In this document: one piece after another, positions 11,867 through 51,539 of the stretch | How positions within the stretch are numbered: position 1 is the first letter of the stretch | Layout of the letters: each line of letters begins with the position of its first letter | DNA from: Ophelia neglecta | Lineage: Eukaryota | Assembly: GCA_965285935.1 (NCBI GenBank) | Contig: OZ260662.1 | Span: 24,800,001 to 24,864,000, forward strand | Reading direction: 5' to 3' | DNA: 64,000 nt | The notes under the pieces: generated by a model | Seen by the model: only the letters and a program-made list of their open reading frames with translations | Told to the model about the DNA's origin: nothing | The model's database searches: none | Program-made: the position numbers and the translations under genes

Positions 11867-11948
11867 ATGCACCTAGACGAGATTGCCCGAGCATGGCTGG
11901 AGATAGCTTTAACCTTGCTGCTCACGTTTACATCTAGTGCCGTTCAAG
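11867..11948 (+). CDS. nAChR-like coding exon 1 (signal peptide MHLDEIARAWLEIALTLLLTFTSSAVQ)
   Basis: ATG at 11867, hydrophobic core, donor CAAG|gtgagc in phase 1; an acceptor tttgcag| at 11851 implies upstream non-coding exon(s). Confidence 0.85.
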
Positions 11949-14900
11949 GTGAGCAATAATCTCTCAGGGATGGACCATTTGTATGAACGCAATGGTTTGG
12001 ACAGTGAGAAGATGCTGGCTGATTATCATTCGGCATTCACAGAATATTATTGTTTTTTAATCCACTTAGTCAATAAGACCAATGATTTACGACACATACT
12101 TTGTTTTGGTTTCTGCAAAAAAATATTCACATAACATGACAGTGCCCACCACACGTTTGTAGCAAGTTAGCAATATCGTTTCTCTGATCAAATCCCCACT
12201 CTCTACTCAAACTATATCCGGTTCGTCACTTGTATTAAAGGAAAGAGTTTATTTCTTAAACATATAAATATTATATATGTATTTGACGTTGAAACCAAAA
12301 AAAAATACTTATTTTCCATTAAGGCCGCGGAAGAGGCAGGGTTGCCCGCAAATCAATGCCAGAAGCCGGCGCCACTGAGCAGCGCCTGATACAACATTTG
12401 CTGCGGAACTACGATACGGACGCCCGTGGAGTCACCAATTCAAACGACACTGTACGTGTAGAAATACAGTTCCTGCTACTCAGGATTCAAGGATTGGTAC
12501 GTGACAATGTAATAGTGCCAATGATTTGGAGTGCATGATAGTTTGTTTACCCACAATTGGGTCAGTTTCTACCAAGGAATGGCCGTTTGCACCACGAAGG
12601 TGCGATTGTTACAAACATACATGGAGTTTCCCAACATGTGTTGTATGAAGGTCTTTAGTGTATGGCTCTGGGTCTGGGGCTTTGTAGTAATTTAGATGAG
12701 AAACGCCGCGAAAATATCAGAAAAATATTTATAACATATTGAATATATGGGGACATCCTATAAGTTGTATAGGAAATACTCCTGCGGGTATTCAATGGAT
12801 CTAGCCACTGAAGAATCCAAACATGCTTAAAACTGTTTACAAAGATTACTTTTTGTCTCACACACTGGTAAGCAAGACTCAAAATTGCAAGCACCACAAT
12901 AATAATATTATTCCAAGAGTTGACAAAATCATTAGTTTTAAATCATTTCATAAGACTAGCCAACTTTACGACTTATCCAAGCTTAATGTCAACCTCAGAA
13001 AAGTAGTTCGTGTAGTTTCGGCATGAGAGTGCTTGTGAACATAAGGGATTAGCACCAAAAGGGTGTTTTCACAGTGGGTGGTCACGGTCAATCTGATCTT
13101 AGTCTCGCAAGGTAAAATTGGGGTGTAAATCTGGAACAGTTTGGCAAATGGAGAATTCCAAGTAATGATAAAGCAACGATTGGTTAAACAAATATGCGTC
13201 AAAATGAAATACACGAATAGAAAAAAACGAAACAATGCAAGTTTACAAACTAATATGACAGCCAATTGTTTATGTGAGGCGGATAATCCGCTGGTTCATA
13301 TTGTTAATGTCAATTTGCTATGTCCAGCTATATTGTTCTGAACCGCATACTATTGGAAGCGGGTAAAAAGGTCAATACATTATATGTTTAAATCCTTAAA
13401 CCTGGGGACAAATTTAAAAAAAATTGCAACGTTAAGTAGGCAGCAGTGATCATAAAGGGGTTGCTGGTAAAACTATTTAATATATTTTGCCCACTGACAA
13501 AACCAGTGATCACTGGTTAATATTTTATTCGTAAAATAAAAAGAAGTTGTGGGGCATCTAATTTGCTCTATGCTTTCAACTTGCCATAACATAAACTGTA
13601 GTTGCAACTTGGCATGCATGTTGATGCAATCACTTGTTATTTTATTCATTCCATGGCATTTGCTTACAACTGTGTAACTTTGAAGACATTGATTAGTCAA
13701 TGAAGCAAACTTTCGTTTGTTTTCAGTACTTGCTTGGGGAAAGTATGAATGAGACACATCGAAAAAAACTGATTATAAAGTATCACTATGAATATATTAA
13801 ACACGTTTTCTTTTATGTTTAGGACGAACGCAGTCAGGTCCTGACAACTACTGGGCTCATAATATGCGTAAGATTGCACCTAATACCATAGGAAAACAAT
13901 TAATTGTTCAGATTCCAACAGTTTGTTACTACTTTTGTGCCGTTTGGCTAATAATACTATTACATTTTAGGAAATATCCATGATTTCCTATGGATTTCAC
14001 TATGCATTTTCAGTTTGTTTTCTAAAAAGTAGTATTATACTAGGAAAATCTGACCTGAAATACTGGAATAACATCCATAGTAGTTTTATCTGAGCGAGTT
14101 CTTTAAAAGTAAGTAGTGACTTATTCTATCACTTAAGTGCCATGTATCGCCCTTCTAGGATTGGCAAGATGACAGGTTACGATGGAACAAAGAGGAATTT
14201 GACTATATCGAGGATATCGTCATCCGACCTAACAGAATATGGCTCCCTGAGCTGGCTCTCATGAACGGGTATCATTATGATTCGATTTTTTATATGTTAA
14301 ACGTTCGATTTTTTAACAGCGCTATTAACTCTTTGCCTGATAGAGATTATCCTGGCTACAGAGGCATGCCTACTTATTTCAACGTAGGTGTATATTGCTG
14401 ATGTAGGATGAGGATTATTAGTTTAGTCTAACACGCCATAAGTAATTTGCTCGGCTACCTATGATATATTATGGCAGTTCCAATAGTTTTTATGCATTCC
14501 CCACATACTAAGAGATACCTTAGATGACACCTGTCTGCTACTGCAATATGCACTTCAACTACATACAAATTATCAACATAATAACCAATTCCGTTAAATC
14601 TGTGTATGATTGTTTTACCTTACAGGGCCGATGAGTTAGCACCAGACTTTAGAAAGATTCGCGTCCTGCTCCGTCACGACGGACACGTGCATTGGGAGCC
14701 TGGTGGAATCTTTACGACTACGTGTGACATCGATATTCGCTACTTTCCGTTCGATGAGCAAAGTTGCATCATACAGTTTGGAGCCTGGGCGTACTACTCC
14801 GCTCGAATGAACATCACGAATGCAAGTCACGAGGTGACGACGCATGATTTCAAATTAAATGGTGAATGGCACATTTTCCGCACAAAATCAGTGTGGAACG

Positions 14901-15990
14901 AGACTGTTTTACCGTGTTGTGCCAATACACGTTACCCGTATGTGGAATTTACGCTATTTCTGCGAAGACGGTACACATTTTACGTAATGAATATTATTCT
15001 GCCTTGTACCTTGCTGTCAGTTCTGGTGATGATAGTGTTTTGTTTACCGCCTGATGCTGGAGAAAAAATATCCCTGGGTATCTCTGTGCTGCTTGCTTTC
15101 ACAGTGTTCTTGTTGATGGTAGCTGAAAACATACCAAGGACCTCTTTACATATACCTATTATTGGTGAGAATTAACATGCCATGTCCGCTTTTAAAGTGG
15201 AAAGAAATTTACGCAAATATTTTGATTTCTATGTATAACCTTTGGTTGGTATACACTTGAAATTAGTTTGAATTCTAAGTCTGTAATCAACCCTAATCCC
15301 CACATTCCTATATTATTTAGCCAGATATGTCTATATGTTTGGCACTACTACAACCTGTATTCTGTTATGTCTACTTATACATGCCTGGCAAAGAAACAAA
15401 TTAAATATGTTTTGAAACGAAATACTCGGCCTATTCATCACACCTAACATGTGTTATATATTTTTCCCAATTGGTAATATAGTTTTATATTTTCAGTTAT
15501 GTACCTAGCTTGCACCATGGCGCTAGGAACAGTATCAGTGTGCCTAACCGTTCTGGTTCTGAATCTTCACCATAGGGATGCAGAACGACCTGTTCCTAAG
15601 TGGGCCAGAGTACTATTTTTGAATTTACTCTCAAAAGTGCTCTGTGTTCGAGCTCGAAAGCCAAAAACTTTGGCGGATAATCTCCTACTGGACTCTCCAC
15701 CTGGAGAAGTCAGTATTAAGAGCGGGTTAAAACGTATTGCCCGGGACGTGGGCTTACTTCGCCCTATGCTCCAGCAGAATGGGGACTTGGACCGGGGATT
15801 TACCACCCCGCAAAGCACAGTGATCCCAAACCGGGAGAGACCGCATGCAGATCACACTCACGACTGGAAGGAGCTGAGTAACGTGCTGGATCGACTATTC
15901 TTTTGGATAGTCTTCATCTTTATGTCGGCTTCGGCCGGAATTATTCTTCTGGTGCCTATGTATAAAGTGTCGGAGGTTGCTGATCTCTAG
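11867..15990 (+). CDS. Nicotinic acetylcholine receptor-like alpha subunit (Cys-loop cation channel), 6 coding exons: 11867-11948, 12324-12496, 13823-13867, 14159-14268, 14626-15164, 15497-15990; 1443 nt, 480 aa
   Basis: Hand-spliced: all introns are GT-AG and the phases (1,0,0,2,1) give one open frame. It has a signal peptide, an N-terminal helix EQRLIQHLLRNYD, WLPE loop A, Cys-loop CDIDIRYFPFDEQSC, loop B GAWAY, vicinal CC in loop C, M1 FYVMNIILPC, M2 GEKISLGISVLLAFTVFLLMVAE, M3 followed by LNLHHR, and M4 preceded by WKELSNVLDRLFFW. Confidence 0.96.
12324..12496 (+). CDS. nAChR-like coding exon 2 (GRGRGRVARKSMPEAGATEQRLIQHLLRNYD...LRIQGL)
   Basis: Acceptor ttccattaag|, in frame with ORF 12356; donor TTG|gtacgt in phase 0. 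Confidence 0.9.
13823..13867 (+). CDS. nAChR-like coding exon 3, 45 nt (DERSQVLTTTGLIIC; loop D)
   Basis: Acceptor ttttatgtttag|, donor |gtaaga; aligns with the conserved 45-nt DEKNQVLTTNxW exon of nAChR genes. Not in the ORF track. Confidence 0.93.
14159..14268 (+). CDS. nAChR-like coding exon 4, 110 nt (DWQDDRLRWNKEEFDYIEDIVIRPNRIWLPELALMNG; loop A)
   Basis: Acceptor ccttctag|, donor GG|gtatca in phase 2; WxDxxLxW and IWxP motifs. Not in the ORF track. Confidence 0.94.
14626..15164 (+). CDS. nAChR-like coding exon 5 (Cys-loop, loops B and C, M1, M2)
   Basis: Acceptor ttaccttacag|, donor ATTG|gtgaga; lies within ORF 14606-15175. Confidence 0.96.
15497..15990 (+). CDS. nAChR-like coding exon 6 (M3, cytoplasmic loop, M4, stop)
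   Basis: Acceptor tattttcag|; the split codon G+TT gives Val, then ORF 15499-15990 ends in TAG. Confidence 0.95.
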
Positions 15991-28349: not shown

Positions 28350-29573
28350 TCAAAGTTCTTGTAATCGCAAACCATCTTCTTTGCTGGAAAGGCCGCTTAT
28401 TTCGCCAATGCGAGTACGCGAGGTGTGGGTGTAGGATCGCTGGCGGGTAACACTGCGCTTGCACACTTGACGCATACATAGAACATCCGCCACTTCATGG
28501 CGGAATTTCTTCCCGGTGATACAGTAGAGAAAAAAATTGATGCTATGATTAACGTACATCAGAAGGAAACATATAATTTTCACCAGCTGTGCTACTGCTA
28601 CACCGTATGTTGAATGCATCCACCAGGCTGCCGGAAAAACCGAATACAGAGTGAATGGCAATGTAAGAAGGAACCAGCTAAAAGAAACAGAAAGTAGCAT
28701 GTATGTAATGCGACGTTGCGTCTCGTTTTGAGCCTGTTTTCCGATGTATGTAGATCTGTAGACGCCGCCGTAGGTATTTTGAATAGACTGCCTTTTAGAG
28801 TTTCTGATCATAGGAGAGTCCCGGTTCAGTTTCATGATTATGCACACGTTAAGCCCTAATACGATCACAAATGGTATGAAAGAATAGGTGGCCAACTTTA
28901 AGTAATTGTAAGTATAGTTGTGAAAATTATCCCAGCGGTAGGGACCACAAATGAATTTTGTTCCAAGATCAGACTTGAATGTCTGTAAATGGTAAGTCCA
29001 TAACAATTGTATGTTGTAAACGACCATAATAACAAAACATGCGAGAGTCATTGTGGCCGCTCTGCGTGTTGTGCAAAACATGGCGGCTTTTAGTGGAAAC
29101 CATACCGCCACGAACCTATCGGATGTCATAAACACTATCAGCCAAGCCGACATATGTAATGCCATTGCGAAGAAGAATATCAATGTCTTACACAAACCGT
29201 TCGAAGCGTGTAAAAACTCCACTCCAAAAACCACCCGCACCCAAGTTTTCAAAGCACTTACATACAAAACAATGGTATCAGCACATGCCAACATCATTAG
29301 ATAAACATAAACGGACTTCCCGAGCATGCGCTTGCGCACAATAACCGCTATGCTTAGACAATTGCCAAACGTACCTACTAAAATGATTATAGGTAATAAG
29401 TATTGTAATAAACCATACGAGACAGCTGTGATCCGCATTTGCCCGGGATTCTTCGTCAGCGGGGTGTGGTTAAGTGCAGAACTATTGGAGTTATCTAGAA
29501 GCTCCGCAGGGTACAAAAAACTGTAGTTGTTAGCGCGTGTAGCAGTGCTGTTTAGATAAAGGGAATGCTCCAT
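28350..29573 (-). CDS. Class A GPCR, FMRFamide/peptide-receptor-like orphan (407 aa, intronless CDS), paralog 1
   Basis: Seven hydrophobic segments; GN in TM1, LACAD in TM2, TM3 Cys plus SDRFVAVWFP, IPF in TM5, LLTLP in TM6, NHSINFFLYC in TM7, helix 8 KFRHEV; N-terminal N-glycosylation sequons. Confidence 0.95.
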   Translation of the reverse strand: MEHSLYLNSTATRANNYSFLYPAELLDNSNSSALNHTPLTKNPGQMRITAVSYGLLQYLLPIIILVGTFGNCLSIAVIVRKRMLGKSVYVYLMMLACADTIVLYVSALKTWVRVVFGVEFLHASNGLCKTLIFFFAMALHMSAWLIVFMTSDRFVAVWFPLKAAMFCTTRRAATMTLACFVIMVVYNIQLLWTYHLQTFKSDLGTKFICGPYRWDNFHNYTYNYLKLATYSFIPFVIVLGLNVCIIMKLNRDSPMIRNSKRQSIQNTYGGVYRSTYIGKQAQNETQRRITYMLLSVSFSWFLLTLPFTLYSVFPAAWWMHSTYGVAVAQLVKIICFLLMYVNHSINFFLYCITGKKFRHEVADVLCMRQVCKRSVTRQRSYTHTSRTRIGEISGLSSKEDGLRLQEL

Positions 29574-34879: not shown

Positions 34880-36571
34880 GATTTCTTGATCTTTCTTTAT
34901 TAATCGAGATATTGTGTACAATGTGTTTAAACAATCTAATTGGCTCCTGAGGCTAACTTTAGCCTATATGGGCCTCTGCTACTATTAACATTTTTATTGC
35001 TGCGCCATAAACGTATGCAACAGATCTATATAAGAAAAATTACAAAATAGGTGCATTGCTGTACACGGCACAGATGGATTGGAAAAATCAGTACCATAGT
35101 TATGTAGTACAATACAAGCGAGAATGATTTACAAACAGAGAAAAGATTTTACCATTTTTTTAAACGTATGAATAGAACAGTTATAATCTAAGAAATTTCT
35201 GGCATTGTTGTATGTCGTAATACTCTGATATAAAATGTGATTCTTTAATACATTAGTCTTTACAATTGGTAGATGGAGATTACATGATTGGCGAGTGGGA
35301 TATGCATGAACTTGAAAGTTAAATTGTAGTAACATCGAGATAATTCTTGGTAATTTCCCATTAAGGAATTTAAATATAAATATATGAAGTTTATATTGAA
35401 ATATAGAGTCAACAGTTAGAATGTTGTTTTCTAAGAATATTGGTGCGGAGGGCGCGGATCGGGACTTCCCAAAGACCATTCTTATGGCTCGCTTTTGAAT
35501 AGTACGAAGTGGATCGATATACGTTGTACACGTACTCCCCCAAATCTCAATACAGTAATCCAAATATGGATAAAGGAAAGCATAATACAGCGAGTGGAGA
35601 GTTTTATTAGTGAGAACTTTACGGGCCTTTGTTAAGATACCAAGTCCTCTACAAATTTTCCCTTTGATATATAATATATGGTCCTTCCATGTCAGATTGG
35701 AATCAAGGATAACCCCTAAGAATTTTGTCTTGTGTACACGATCAATCTTTTGACCTTTAATAGTCAGGTCACAAGTAGGCTCTACAGTACGGCCTTTGTT
35801 GCAAAATATCATAAAGTGTGTCTTGTTAACATTAAGAGTAAGTTTATTAGCATATAACCACGGTAAAATAAGTGAAATTTCTTTGTTGACTGTGTCCAGT
35901 AAATTATCGATATTTTTACCCGTAACAAGAAAATTAGAGTCGTCGGCAAACAAAAGAGTAAATAAAACTTTAGAAACTGTTGCCATATCATTGATATAGA
36001 GAAGAAACAGTAGCGGCCCCAGGATAGACCCCTGGGGCACACCACAAGAAATATTTAAATGCATCGAATAAGTGCCTTGGTAGTCAACAAATTGGCTGCG
36101 ACTATGTAAGTAGTTTTCTATCCATTCAAGGGCAATACCGCGAATGCCGTAATTATAGAGTTTGGATAGTAAAATAGTGTGGTTAACGGTATCAAATGCT
36201 TTGGAAAGGTCAATAAATAAGCCCACTGCACAATCACCTTTATCCAGAGCCTCAGAAATTTTATTAGTGAGGACTGTTATTGCCAGGTTAGTGGAGTGAC
36301 TTTGTCTAAAGCCAAACTGATTATCATATAAGATATGATTCGCCCTAATAAAAGATTCGAGTCTGGTATACATGAGCCTCTCGAATATCTTTGAGAAAAT
36401 AGGCAACACAGAAACGGGACGATAATTGGTAAATGAACTTGGGTCTCCACTTTTAAAGATAGGCAATACTCTCGCAATTTTCAGTTCATCTGGAAAGTGT
36501 CCCTGAAGAAAAGATAGTTCAATAGTATGAAGAAGTGGATCCATGTATGAATTTATACAAGTTTTGATAAT
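34880..36571 (-). mobile_element. Young, 5'-truncated CR1-group LINE with intact RT C-terminal ORF and 3'UTR
   Basis: ORF 35129-36544 stays open upstream to ~36571 (IIKTCINSY); 3'UTR stem-loop aggcta-N4-tagcct at 34950-34965; AATAAA (minus) at 34896-34901 followed by a short A-rich repeat tail. Confidence 0.92.
35129..36544 (-). CDS. Reverse transcriptase (LINE ORF2 fragment, 471 aa, no endonuclease domain)
   Basis: NYRPVSVL, QFGFR, DLSKAFDTV, GVPQGSILGPLLF, FADD and KFLGV motifs without a stop. Probably not independently expressed; the Met is internal. Confidence 0.9.
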   Translation of the reverse strand: MDPLLHTIELSFLQGHFPDELKIARVLPIFKSGDPSSFTNYRPVSVLPIFSKIFERLMYTRLESFIRANHILYDNQFGFRQSHSTNLAITVLTNKISEALDKGDCAVGLFIDLSKAFDTVNHTILLSKLYNYGIRGIALEWIENYLHSRSQFVDYQGTYSMHLNISCGVPQGSILGPLLFLLYINDMATVSKVLFTLLFADDSNFLVTGKNIDNLLDTVNKEISLILPWLYANKLTLNVNKTHFMIFCNKGRTVEPTCDLTIKGQKIDRVHKTKFLGVILDSNLTWKDHILYIKGKICRGLGILTKARKVLTNKTLHSLYYAFLYPYLDYCIEIWGSTCTTYIDPLRTIQKRAIRMVFGKSRSAPSAPIFLENNILTVDSIFQYKLHIFIFKFLNGKLPRIISMLLQFNFQVHAYPTRQSCNLHLPIVKTNVLKNHILYQSITTYNNARNFLDYNCSIHTFKKMVKSFLCL

Positions 36572-50312: not shown

Positions 50313-51539
50313 TCAAACTTCCCGCATTTGAATGTCATTTGTGTTACTTGATTGCCAAACGTGATCTAAGACTGGCGTGCGCGTGGTTCGGGAATAATGT
50401 GTGTTGGATTGTCCTCTCTTCTGATTTGGTATTAGACAGAGGATATCAGCTACTTCCTGTCGAAACTTCCTTCCAGTGAGACAGTAGAGGAAAAAGTTGG
50501 TACTATGGTTGATGTACATAAGAATAAAGCATATTACTTTAGCCAATAGTCCGGGGGCTTTTCCATAAGTCTCGTGTTCATACCACGACCCTGGCAACAC
50601 GGAGAACAGTGTAAATGGTACTGTAAGAATGAGCCAGCTGAAAGACACAGCAAGCAGCATGTAGGTTATACGCCGCTGCGTTTCATTTTGAACGTTGCGT
50701 CCATCAACATGTCGTCCACCGCTGTTTCCGCCTTGTTTGCTAGTTGTGAAAGATTTTGAATTCCTCAGCATCGGTGAATCCTTGTTGAGTTTGATAACGA
50801 TGCCAACGTTGAAAAATAAAACTGCTGCAAATGGTATGATTGAATAAGTAGCGAACTTCAAGTAATTATAGGTATATTTATGAAAGTTATCGTTGCTGTA
50901 GGGCCCGCATTTATGATAGGTACCTGAACCGCTTTCAAATGTTTGAAGATGAAAAGTCCAAAAAAGATGAACGTTGTATCCAATAACTATTATAAAGCAC
51001 ACAGTAGTAATAACAGCAGCCCGTCGGGTTGTACAGAAAATGGCTGCTTTCAACGGAAACCAAACCGCAACAAACCTGTCAGAAGTCAGGAATACTACTA
51101 ACCACGCGGACATGTGTAGAGATATGACAAAGAAAAACATAAGCGATTTACAGGAGGCGCTGGAAACATGCAGAAATTCATACCCAAAAGCAGCTCGAAC
51201 CCATGTTTTAAGAGCACTAAAATATAACACCGCAGTGTCGGCGCAGGCCAGCAATAGTAAGTAAAAATACACAGATTTCCCTAGCATGCGCTTGCGCAAA
51301 ATAACAGCCATACTAAGGATGTTGCCAAAAGTACCAACTAATATTATAACCGGAAGCACGTACCGGATCAACGCCATTGACACATATTCGAACTGTTTTT
51401 GGCCCGGGTTTTTTTCTTGTACACTACTCCAGTTGAACGAACCGTTAGGCCCATTTGGAAACTCCTGGATAAGAGCGAGGTCCAGCGAGCTGTTGGTATT
51501 CACAAATGATTTATTCCAATTGCCAGAGGAATAAGCCAT
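50313..51539 (-). CDS. Class A GPCR, FMRFamide/peptide-receptor-like orphan (408 aa, intronless CDS), paralog 2
   Basis: Same motifs as paralog 1 (GN, LACAD, SDRFVAVWFP, NHSTNFFLYC, KFRQEV); by hand count about 27 differences over ~119 aa of TM1-ICL2. Confidence 0.95.
   Translation of the reverse strand: MAYSSGNWNKSFVNTNSSLDLALIQEFPNGPNGSFNWSSVQEKNPGQKQFEYVSMALIRYVLPVIILVGTFGNILSMAVILRKRMLGKSVYFYLLLLACADTAVLYFSALKTWVRAAFGYEFLHVSSASCKSLMFFFVISLHMSAWLVVFLTSDRFVAVWFPLKAAIFCTTRRAAVITTVCFIIVIGYNVHLFWTFHLQTFESGSGTYHKCGPYSNDNFHKYTYNYLKFATYSIIPFAAVLFFNVGIVIKLNKDSPMLRNSKSFTTSKQGGNSGGRHVDGRNVQNETQRRITYMLLAVSFSWLILTVPFTLFSVLPGSWYEHETYGKAPGLLAKVICFILMYINHSTNFFLYCLTGRKFRQEVADILCLIPNQKRGQSNTHYSRTTRTPVLDHVWQSSNTNDIQMREV

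Follow-up and report, generated by a model that had tools for sequence, protein, structure and literature searches.

Subunits of the nicotinic acetylcholine receptor (nAChR) family include several divergent groups. Alpha7 and ACR-16 form homomers, alpha5 and beta3 are accessory subunits, and DEG-3/DES-2 is a divergent nAChR-type, choline-sensitive cation channel with non-standard pharmacology. Lophotrochozoans carry tens to hundreds of nAChR-like genes, most of them without a known ligand (Jiao 2019, PMC6896357; De Gieter 2023, PMC10338036); annelids have 52-129 (PMC6896357), and orphans are known (PMC10338036). Cephalopod chemotactile receptors (CRs), which belong to a lophotrochozoan lineage, are cation channels derived from nAChRs that dispense with the canonical acetylcholine (ACh) box; in octopus they have expanded in a lineage-specific manner, and their pocket residues show diversifying selection (PMC11526382). 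Alpo4 of Alvinella pompejana is an annelid nAChR-like orphan receptor that keeps F103, W159, Y199, Y205 and W65, lacks the vicinal cysteine pair, and has a 16' Met constriction (PMC10338036). Here we describe a gene in a 64-kb stretch of the Ophelia neglecta genome (contig OZ260662.1, positions 24,800,001 to 24,864,000; hereafter the window, whose numbering is used throughout), which lies at 24.81 Mb of contig C2 of the assembly (G000). The window gene (11867-15990, + strand) encodes an intact alpha-type Cys-loop channel subunit whose agonist site departs from the canonical ACh box on its two faces, with the same departures fixed in its annelid orthologues and paralogues.

Residues of the agonist site

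The original prediction, made from the letters of the window, had quoted motifs for loop D (VLTTTGLIICDW), loop A (WLPELALMNGAD) and loop C (VLPCCANTRYPYV) and proposed that three of the five aromatic-box residues are lost. All three motifs are found in the window gene, as are the quoted Cys-loop and M2, and alignment bears out the residue assignments. In a HMMER alignment to solved alpha3 and alpha4 chains the Leu of LPCC occupies the Tyr190 position and the Tyr of RYP that of Tyr198, and a MAFFT alignment with alpha7, ACR-16 and other named subunits places Leu, Ile, Met and Trp at the positions of Trp55, Gln57, Tyr93 and Trp149, respectively. Two of the five box residues are present (TrpB at 149 and TyrC2 at 198), with Met93, Leu190 and Leu55 replacing the others. 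Compensating aromatics, which the prediction had named as evidence that would tell against it, are absent from aligned positions 55 and 93 in the MAFFT alignment with alpha7.

The changes affect both faces. On the principal face, Asp89 of loop A, which is near-universal, is Glu, Tyr93 (TyrA, which makes the cation-pi contact for ACh in alpha7) is Met, and Tyr190 is Leu, with the loop B Trp and Tyr198 kept; on the complementary face, Trp55 is Leu, Gln57 is Ile, and Leu119, which we take to be a residue of this face that lines the agonist site in alpha7, is Glu. The replacement residues are themselves conserved: in an exon-5 alignment of 36 sequences, loop E reads HWEPGG with Glu at the alpha7 Leu119 position in 35 of 35, Leu190 is present in 35 of 36, and Tyr198 in all 36. 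Clade A, the clade that holds the window gene, has no variation among its 12 sequences at Glu119, Trp149, Leu190, the Cys pair or Tyr198, whereas only 55 of its 116 extracellular columns are invariant. Two further aromatics adjoin these loops, Tyr152 by loop B (GAWAYY) and Tyr200 by loop C (RYPY); both are largely conserved within clade A, and their orientation towards the pocket is putative.

The prediction that the pocket had become aliphatic survives in part. Three aromatics are indeed replaced by aliphatic residues or Met, but Glu119 is invariant and Asp89 is replaced by Glu, with Trp149 and Tyr198 kept, so the pocket is not simply aliphatic. To judge from these residues, the site resembles a reduced cation site to which a carboxylate has been added rather than a purely hydrophobic cavity.

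Gene structure, pore and family assignment

The window gene has six exons, and all introns are GT-AG, with borders checked by script. The coding sequence is 1443 nt (480 aa) with no internal stops, and its ATG and stop (TAG at 15988-15990) coincide exactly with the ends of 11867-15990. The frame and splice sites had been predicted to be intact, and exon joining and the Pfam matches agree. The features are as follows.

Exon 1, 11867-11948, + strand: ATG and a signal-peptide-like hydrophobic stretch, predicted, in frame with exon 2 across a GT donor
Exon 2, 12324-12496, + strand: N-terminal helix TEQRLIQHLLRNYD and the first beta strand of the ligand-binding domain, matching Pfam Neur_chan_LBD positions 1-38
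Exon 3 (45 nt), 13823-13867, + strand: loop D DERSQVLTTTGLIIC, with the Leu codon at 13856-13858 at the Trp55 position and Ile at that of Gln57
Exon 4 (110 nt), 14159-14268, + strand: loop A WLPELALMN, with the Met codon at 14261-14263 at the Tyr93 position and Glu at that of Asp89
Exon 5 (539 nt), 14626-15164, + strand: loops E, B and C, the Cys-loop, M1 and M2
Loop E HWEPGG, in exon 5, + strand: Glu119 codon at 14696-14698
Cys-loop CDIDIRYFPFDEQSC, 14723-14767, + strand: 13 residues between the cysteines, containing FPFD
Loop B GAWAY (FGAWAYYS), in exon 5, + strand: Trp149 codon at 14786-14788
Loop C VLPCCANTRYPYV, 14906-14944, + strand: Leu190 codon at 14909-14911, Tyr198 codon at 14933-14935
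M1, 14978-15046, + strand: in exon 5
M2 GEKISLGISVLLAFTVFLLMVAEN, 15059-15130, + strand: E-1', K0', L9' and E20'
Exon 6, 15497-15990, + strand: M3 (15499-15567), cytoplasmic loop, M4 (15886-15957) and TAG stop

Database searches were run for each exon (mainly with window positions 14627-15163) and with the database proteins P0020 and P0123; the joined 480-aa model was used only for local alignment, BLAST against fetched proteins, and the tree. Pfam Neur_chan_LBD (PF02931) matches exons 2, 4 (E 1.9e-08) and 5 (E 1.6e-24), and Neur_chan_memb (PF02932) matches exons 5 (E 2.5e-20) and 6 (E 2.1e-13), giving the domain order of nAChR-type Cys-loop subunits. The best solved-structure matches of exon 5 are alpha3, alpha4 and alpha7 chains (E about 1e-45 to 1e-43), and the matches in the ESM Atlas carry only the label 'nicotinic receptor'. 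The alpha assignment is reflected in the vicinal pair Cys192-Cys193, with LPCC aligned opposite the YxCC of alpha3 and alpha4. M2 aligns without gaps to those of alpha3 and alpha4 and has E-1', K0', L9' and E20'; by motif the pore is of the cation-selective nAChR type, alpha7-like, and the channel is probably Ca-permeable. The two-domain architecture, the vicinal cysteines and the GEK...L9'...E20' pore are shared with the alpha7/ACR-16 homomers (39% identity to alpha7 over 315-331 aa, and 36% to ACR-16), whereas TyrA, TyrC1, TrpD, Leu119 (Glu) and Asp89 (Glu) set the window protein apart from them. Two other affinities were considered and rejected. The solved DES-2 chain is more distant (E 6.4e-28) than alpha7 (E 4e-43), so the DEG-3 class, one of the altered-pocket relatives cited in the original prediction, is not close, and Alpo4, which keeps its aromatics and lacks the Cys pair, the reverse of the window protein, is absent among the 60 best solved-structure matches of exon 5.

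The 45-nt and 110-nt exons match what we take to be the sizes of vertebrate nAChR exons 3 and 4, and the 539-nt exon 5 presumably covers four exons of CHRNA7; on these sizes, old introns would have been retained in the 5' part of the gene and lost in the middle. Contigs of three sequencing runs from one sample pass straight through the introns with no splice joints, so they represent DNA and are uninformative on splicing or expression. The 3' two thirds of exon 2 are kept in the orthologue loci L038 and L039; the signal-peptide region, made up of exon 1 together with the 5' part of exon 2, is predicted and shows no conservation in the orthologue loci.

Orthologues and purifying selection

A word search with exon 5 recovered exon-sized open reading frames (ORFs; P0001-P0011) with 80-87% identity and further groups at about 57-70%, and its named matches are all annelid (Capitella, Paralvinella and Lamellibrachia). 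Full-length orthologues are HELRODRAFT_94890 of the leech Helobdella (69% identity over 438 aa), LSH36_1607g00011 of Paralvinella (73%) and DgyrCDS2509 of Dimorphilus (64%); all three are annotated as hypothetical and have the pocket residues and pore of the window gene. In two other species (L033 and L038/L039), exon 3 reads DERSQVLTTTGL(V/L)I and exon 4 reads ...RIWLPELALMN, corresponding to Trp55>Leu and Tyr93>Met. The TTTGL of loop D is common to L033, L038/L039 and Helobdella P0123, and loop A WLPELALMN is identical in L033, L038, P0123 and P0125. Exon 6 is 51-63% identical among orthologues, with M3 and M4 conserved and the loop variable. As judged from these alignments, the pocket change is not a one-off loss, being fixed across annelid orthologues and paralogues, which fits a functional non-canonical site.

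The window-type gene appears once per species in the named annelids. L038 and L039 are two inverted clade-A copies on one contig (ena:ERZ25069859 ctg24689, 126658-147116 and 81596-102054 reversed), tens of kb apart and identical in their matched exon peptides; the pair could be the product of a recent inverted duplication or an artefact of the assembly.

Between orthologues, exon 5 has a nonsynonymous divergence (dN) of 0.09-0.13 with saturated synonymous sites (NG86), and the transmembrane part is more constrained (dN 0.04-0.06). Because synonymous divergence (dS) is saturated for nearly all pairs, leaving NG86 ratios undefined, the comparison is expressed as dN far below dS together with the three computable dN/dS ratios, which are 0.04-0.10; a ratio near 1 had been named in the original prediction as a result that would speak against it. 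Allelic differences taken from the contigs of the three runs of that one sample point the same way, as all 13 exonic differences listed are synonymous and the listed indels fall in introns without exception (22 further differences lie beyond those listed); if about one quarter of random coding changes are silent, 13 silent changes out of 13 would be very improbable by chance. The window gene is under strong purifying selection and its orthologues share its residues, in keeping with the prediction of an intact, constrained channel subunit rather than a decaying copy.

Phylogenetic position and relatives in the genome

The placement of the gene had been left to a phylogeny, and a 51-row maximum likelihood tree, with rows hand-picked from the search results, puts it in an annelid-only branch within the protostome sister group of alpha7/ACR-16. 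Clade A (support 99/95) lies within an inner Leu190 clade (100/99) composed of clades A, B, C and a fourth group, which is nested in turn in an 18-row clade made up solely of annelids, Owenia among them (100/99). Four named molluscan Glu119 sequences belong to a sister group that joins the annelid clade at 100/99, and beyond it lies a protostome group containing tick, mite, rotifer and mollusc sequences. Taken together, this protostome assemblage is sister to the alpha7/ACR-16 clade (99/98), and the window gene is outside the latter.

The tree also orders the pocket changes. Trp55>Leu/Val, Gln57>Ile/Val, Asp89>Glu and Tyr93>Met/Ile are found in nearly all rows of the annelid clade, and the window gene belongs to this subfamily both by its Leu/Val55, Glu89, Met/Ile93 and Glu119 signature and by monophyly. 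Tyr190>Leu is limited to the inner clade, with outer members having Tyr or Phe. Glu119 is also present in the molluscan sister clade, where position 93 is Gly or Asp and Trp55 is kept in the two readable sequences. An exhaustive HMMER search gave 13,897 matches, with one 50%-cluster representative at more than 55% identity; among the 150 best matches 16 have Glu119, and the four that are named are molluscan (Lottia, Patella, Haliotis and Mytilus).

The 762-Mb genome contains at least 97 nAChR-like exon matches to exon 5, some with stops, and Leu190 is present in only three of the matched genes, all of them intact and on contig C2. The two other than the window gene are as follows.

Paralogue B, G000:C2:17969846-17997032, - strand: loci L042, L043, L031 and L040, intact, with five recognisable exons over about 27 kb
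Paralogue C, G000:C2:15037972-15042954, + strand: loci L032 and L041, with WTPELSVIN and LPCCPDIRYSKV, looks intact

The rebuilt pocket recurs in both. Paralogue B has Leu55, Met93, Glu119 and Leu190 as in the window gene, and its loop B Trp is Tyr (GAYSY); in paralogue C the exon-5 equivalent is split by three extra introns. In clade B of other species the vicinal Cys pair is sometimes lost, as in Helobdella 70180. Outer members of the annelid clade are present at L003, L005, L006 and L009 (G000:C7 60.6-63.2 Mb and G000:C5 44.9 Mb), all with Gln for Glu at the -1' ring and Asp or Gly at 20'; L003, L005 and L006 carry Glu119, and the match at L009 ends short of position 119.

Possible functions of the subfamily

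From the observed integrity, family, residues, conservation, tree position and purifying selection of the window gene we infer assembly partners, a working agonist site and a ligand class. The gene is firmly placed, as a functional and constrained alpha-type cation-channel subunit, in an annelid-only subfamily, an old one in our reading, whose agonist site has been rebuilt in concert on its two faces. The two faces were altered within a single lineage, and the sister paralogues have the same alterations, which suggests that the faces meet each other; the subunits would assemble with one another, either homomerically or in heteromers drawn from clades A, B and C. The novel site would comprise a Trp, a Tyr and a carboxylate within an aliphatic lining. 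Such a Trp/Tyr/Glu site would bind ACh poorly in the canonical manner, and its ligand would more plausibly be another small endogenous molecule, probably cationic or protonatable. That the faces meet in this way, forming a working non-canonical site for a ligand other than canonically bound ACh, has in our estimate about an even chance. The broader proposal that clades A, B and C are an ancient alpha7-derived set, jointly forming a receptor for a transmitter other than ACh with a conserved physiological rather than chemosensory role, is more tentative.

Several points weigh against this proposal. Among the sequencing runs searched for the window gene none is recorded as RNA, and its transcription is putative. 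The tree holds no alpha9/10, DEG-3 or cephalopod CR sequences. A conserved accessory subunit would be expected to keep its pocket residues equally conserved, and the retained loop B Trp and Tyr198 leave room for binding of ACh or choline. The ligand class is drawn from Glu119 by chemical reasoning, and this residue could instead pair with the conserved Arg/Lys of loop C (RYP) in a structural role.

The strongest competitor, although appreciably less probable than the rebuilt site, is an accessory or structural subunit that occupies a non-agonist position in heteromers with canonical subunits of the same genome, its own pocket free of agonist, and tunes assembly, conductance or Ca permeability as vertebrate alpha5 and beta3 do. 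Those subunits likewise have a conserved pore without the residues for a canonical agonist site. In the window protein key residues are missing on both faces, so that it would supply neither a canonical plus nor a canonical minus face, its pore and gating elements are highly conserved, and the genome offers many canonical subunits as possible partners. There is no link of descent between alpha5/beta3 and the annelid clade, however, and the annelid subfamily has specific replacements that are invariant across paralogous clades rather than relaxed; the fact that a single branch saw changes on each face, shared by every sister paralogue, is also easier to understand if the two faces meet. A channel still gated by ACh or choline, with the loop B Trp, Tyr198 and the new Glu holding the agonist at altered affinity and pharmacology, is unlikely. 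It would agree with the retention of these residues and of the vicinal Cys pair, with the position of the gene inside the nAChR radiation and adjoining the alpha7/ACR-16 group, and with the behaviour of other pentameric ligand-gated ion channels, such as the nematode ACC channels, which bind ACh with rearranged boxes; against it stand the loss of three of the five box residues, including TyrA, and the Tyr that takes the place of the loop B Trp in clade B.

We consider it improbable that the gene encodes a peripheral chemosensory receptor for environmental hydrophobic ligands, the analogy with cephalopod CRs that the original prediction had drawn. Such receptors have precedent in another lophotrochozoan lineage (PMC11526382; PMC10338036), and several aromatics of the window gene have been replaced by aliphatic residues. 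Nevertheless, the 64-kb window holds no second channel gene and the gene's neighbours are two receptor genes of another class and a retroelement, so it is not a member of a tandem chemoreceptor array; it appears once per named annelid species, is under purifying selection with an invariant pocket, the opposite of the CRs, and keeps the Cys pair and a charged Glu in the site. A gene that is solitary and apparently single-copy is not what a CR-like chemosensory family would lead one to expect, and speaks instead for a conserved physiological role; no CR sequence is among the named nearest relatives of the window protein. As for a non-functional duplicate drifting within a large nAChR expansion, the stop-containing matches elsewhere in the genome and the failure to find RNA evidence among the runs on record are what it can draw on, and its probability is close to nil: with the frame and splice sites intact, orthologues of distant annelids 69-87% identical, dN far below dS and exonic polymorphisms synonymous throughout those listed, a pseudogene is effectively refuted by the conservation data.

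If the rebuilt site does bind a ligand other than ACh, its replacement of the cation-pi box by Trp/Tyr/Glu would represent, within the nicotinic branch, a new ligand class and an evolutionarily conserved switch in transmitter specificity; if the subunit is accessory, it would illustrate the origin and lasting fixation of such subunits in animals other than vertebrates. Most lophotrochozoan nAChR-like genes belong to fast-evolving lineage-specific arrays and are difficult to deorphanise. The window gene, which is strongly conserved, apparently present once per named species, equipped with an invariant non-canonical pocket and accompanied by two conserved sister subunits, therefore offers a small and tractable set for deorphanisation. 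Literature searches with the orthologue locus tags and in the supplements of PMC10338036 found no paper naming the subfamily or its orthologues.

Other features of the window and contig

A search of the window against Rfam gave no match. Two intronless ORFs, 28350-29573 (- strand, 407 aa) and 50313-51539 (- strand, 408 aa), lie about 22 kb apart and encode rhodopsin-family G protein-coupled receptors (7tm_1, E about 2e-26), with a weaker match to nematode-type serpentine chemoreceptor models. Between them is a retroelement ORF at 35129-36544 (- strand, 471 aa; RVT_1, E 1.2e-34). At least seven nAChR-like genes are arrayed in tandem further along the same contig, 2.3 Mb downstream of the window (G000:C2:27.08-27.16 Mb; L016, L018, L020, L023 and L025-L027), and none of them has the loop C Cys pair or Tyr190.

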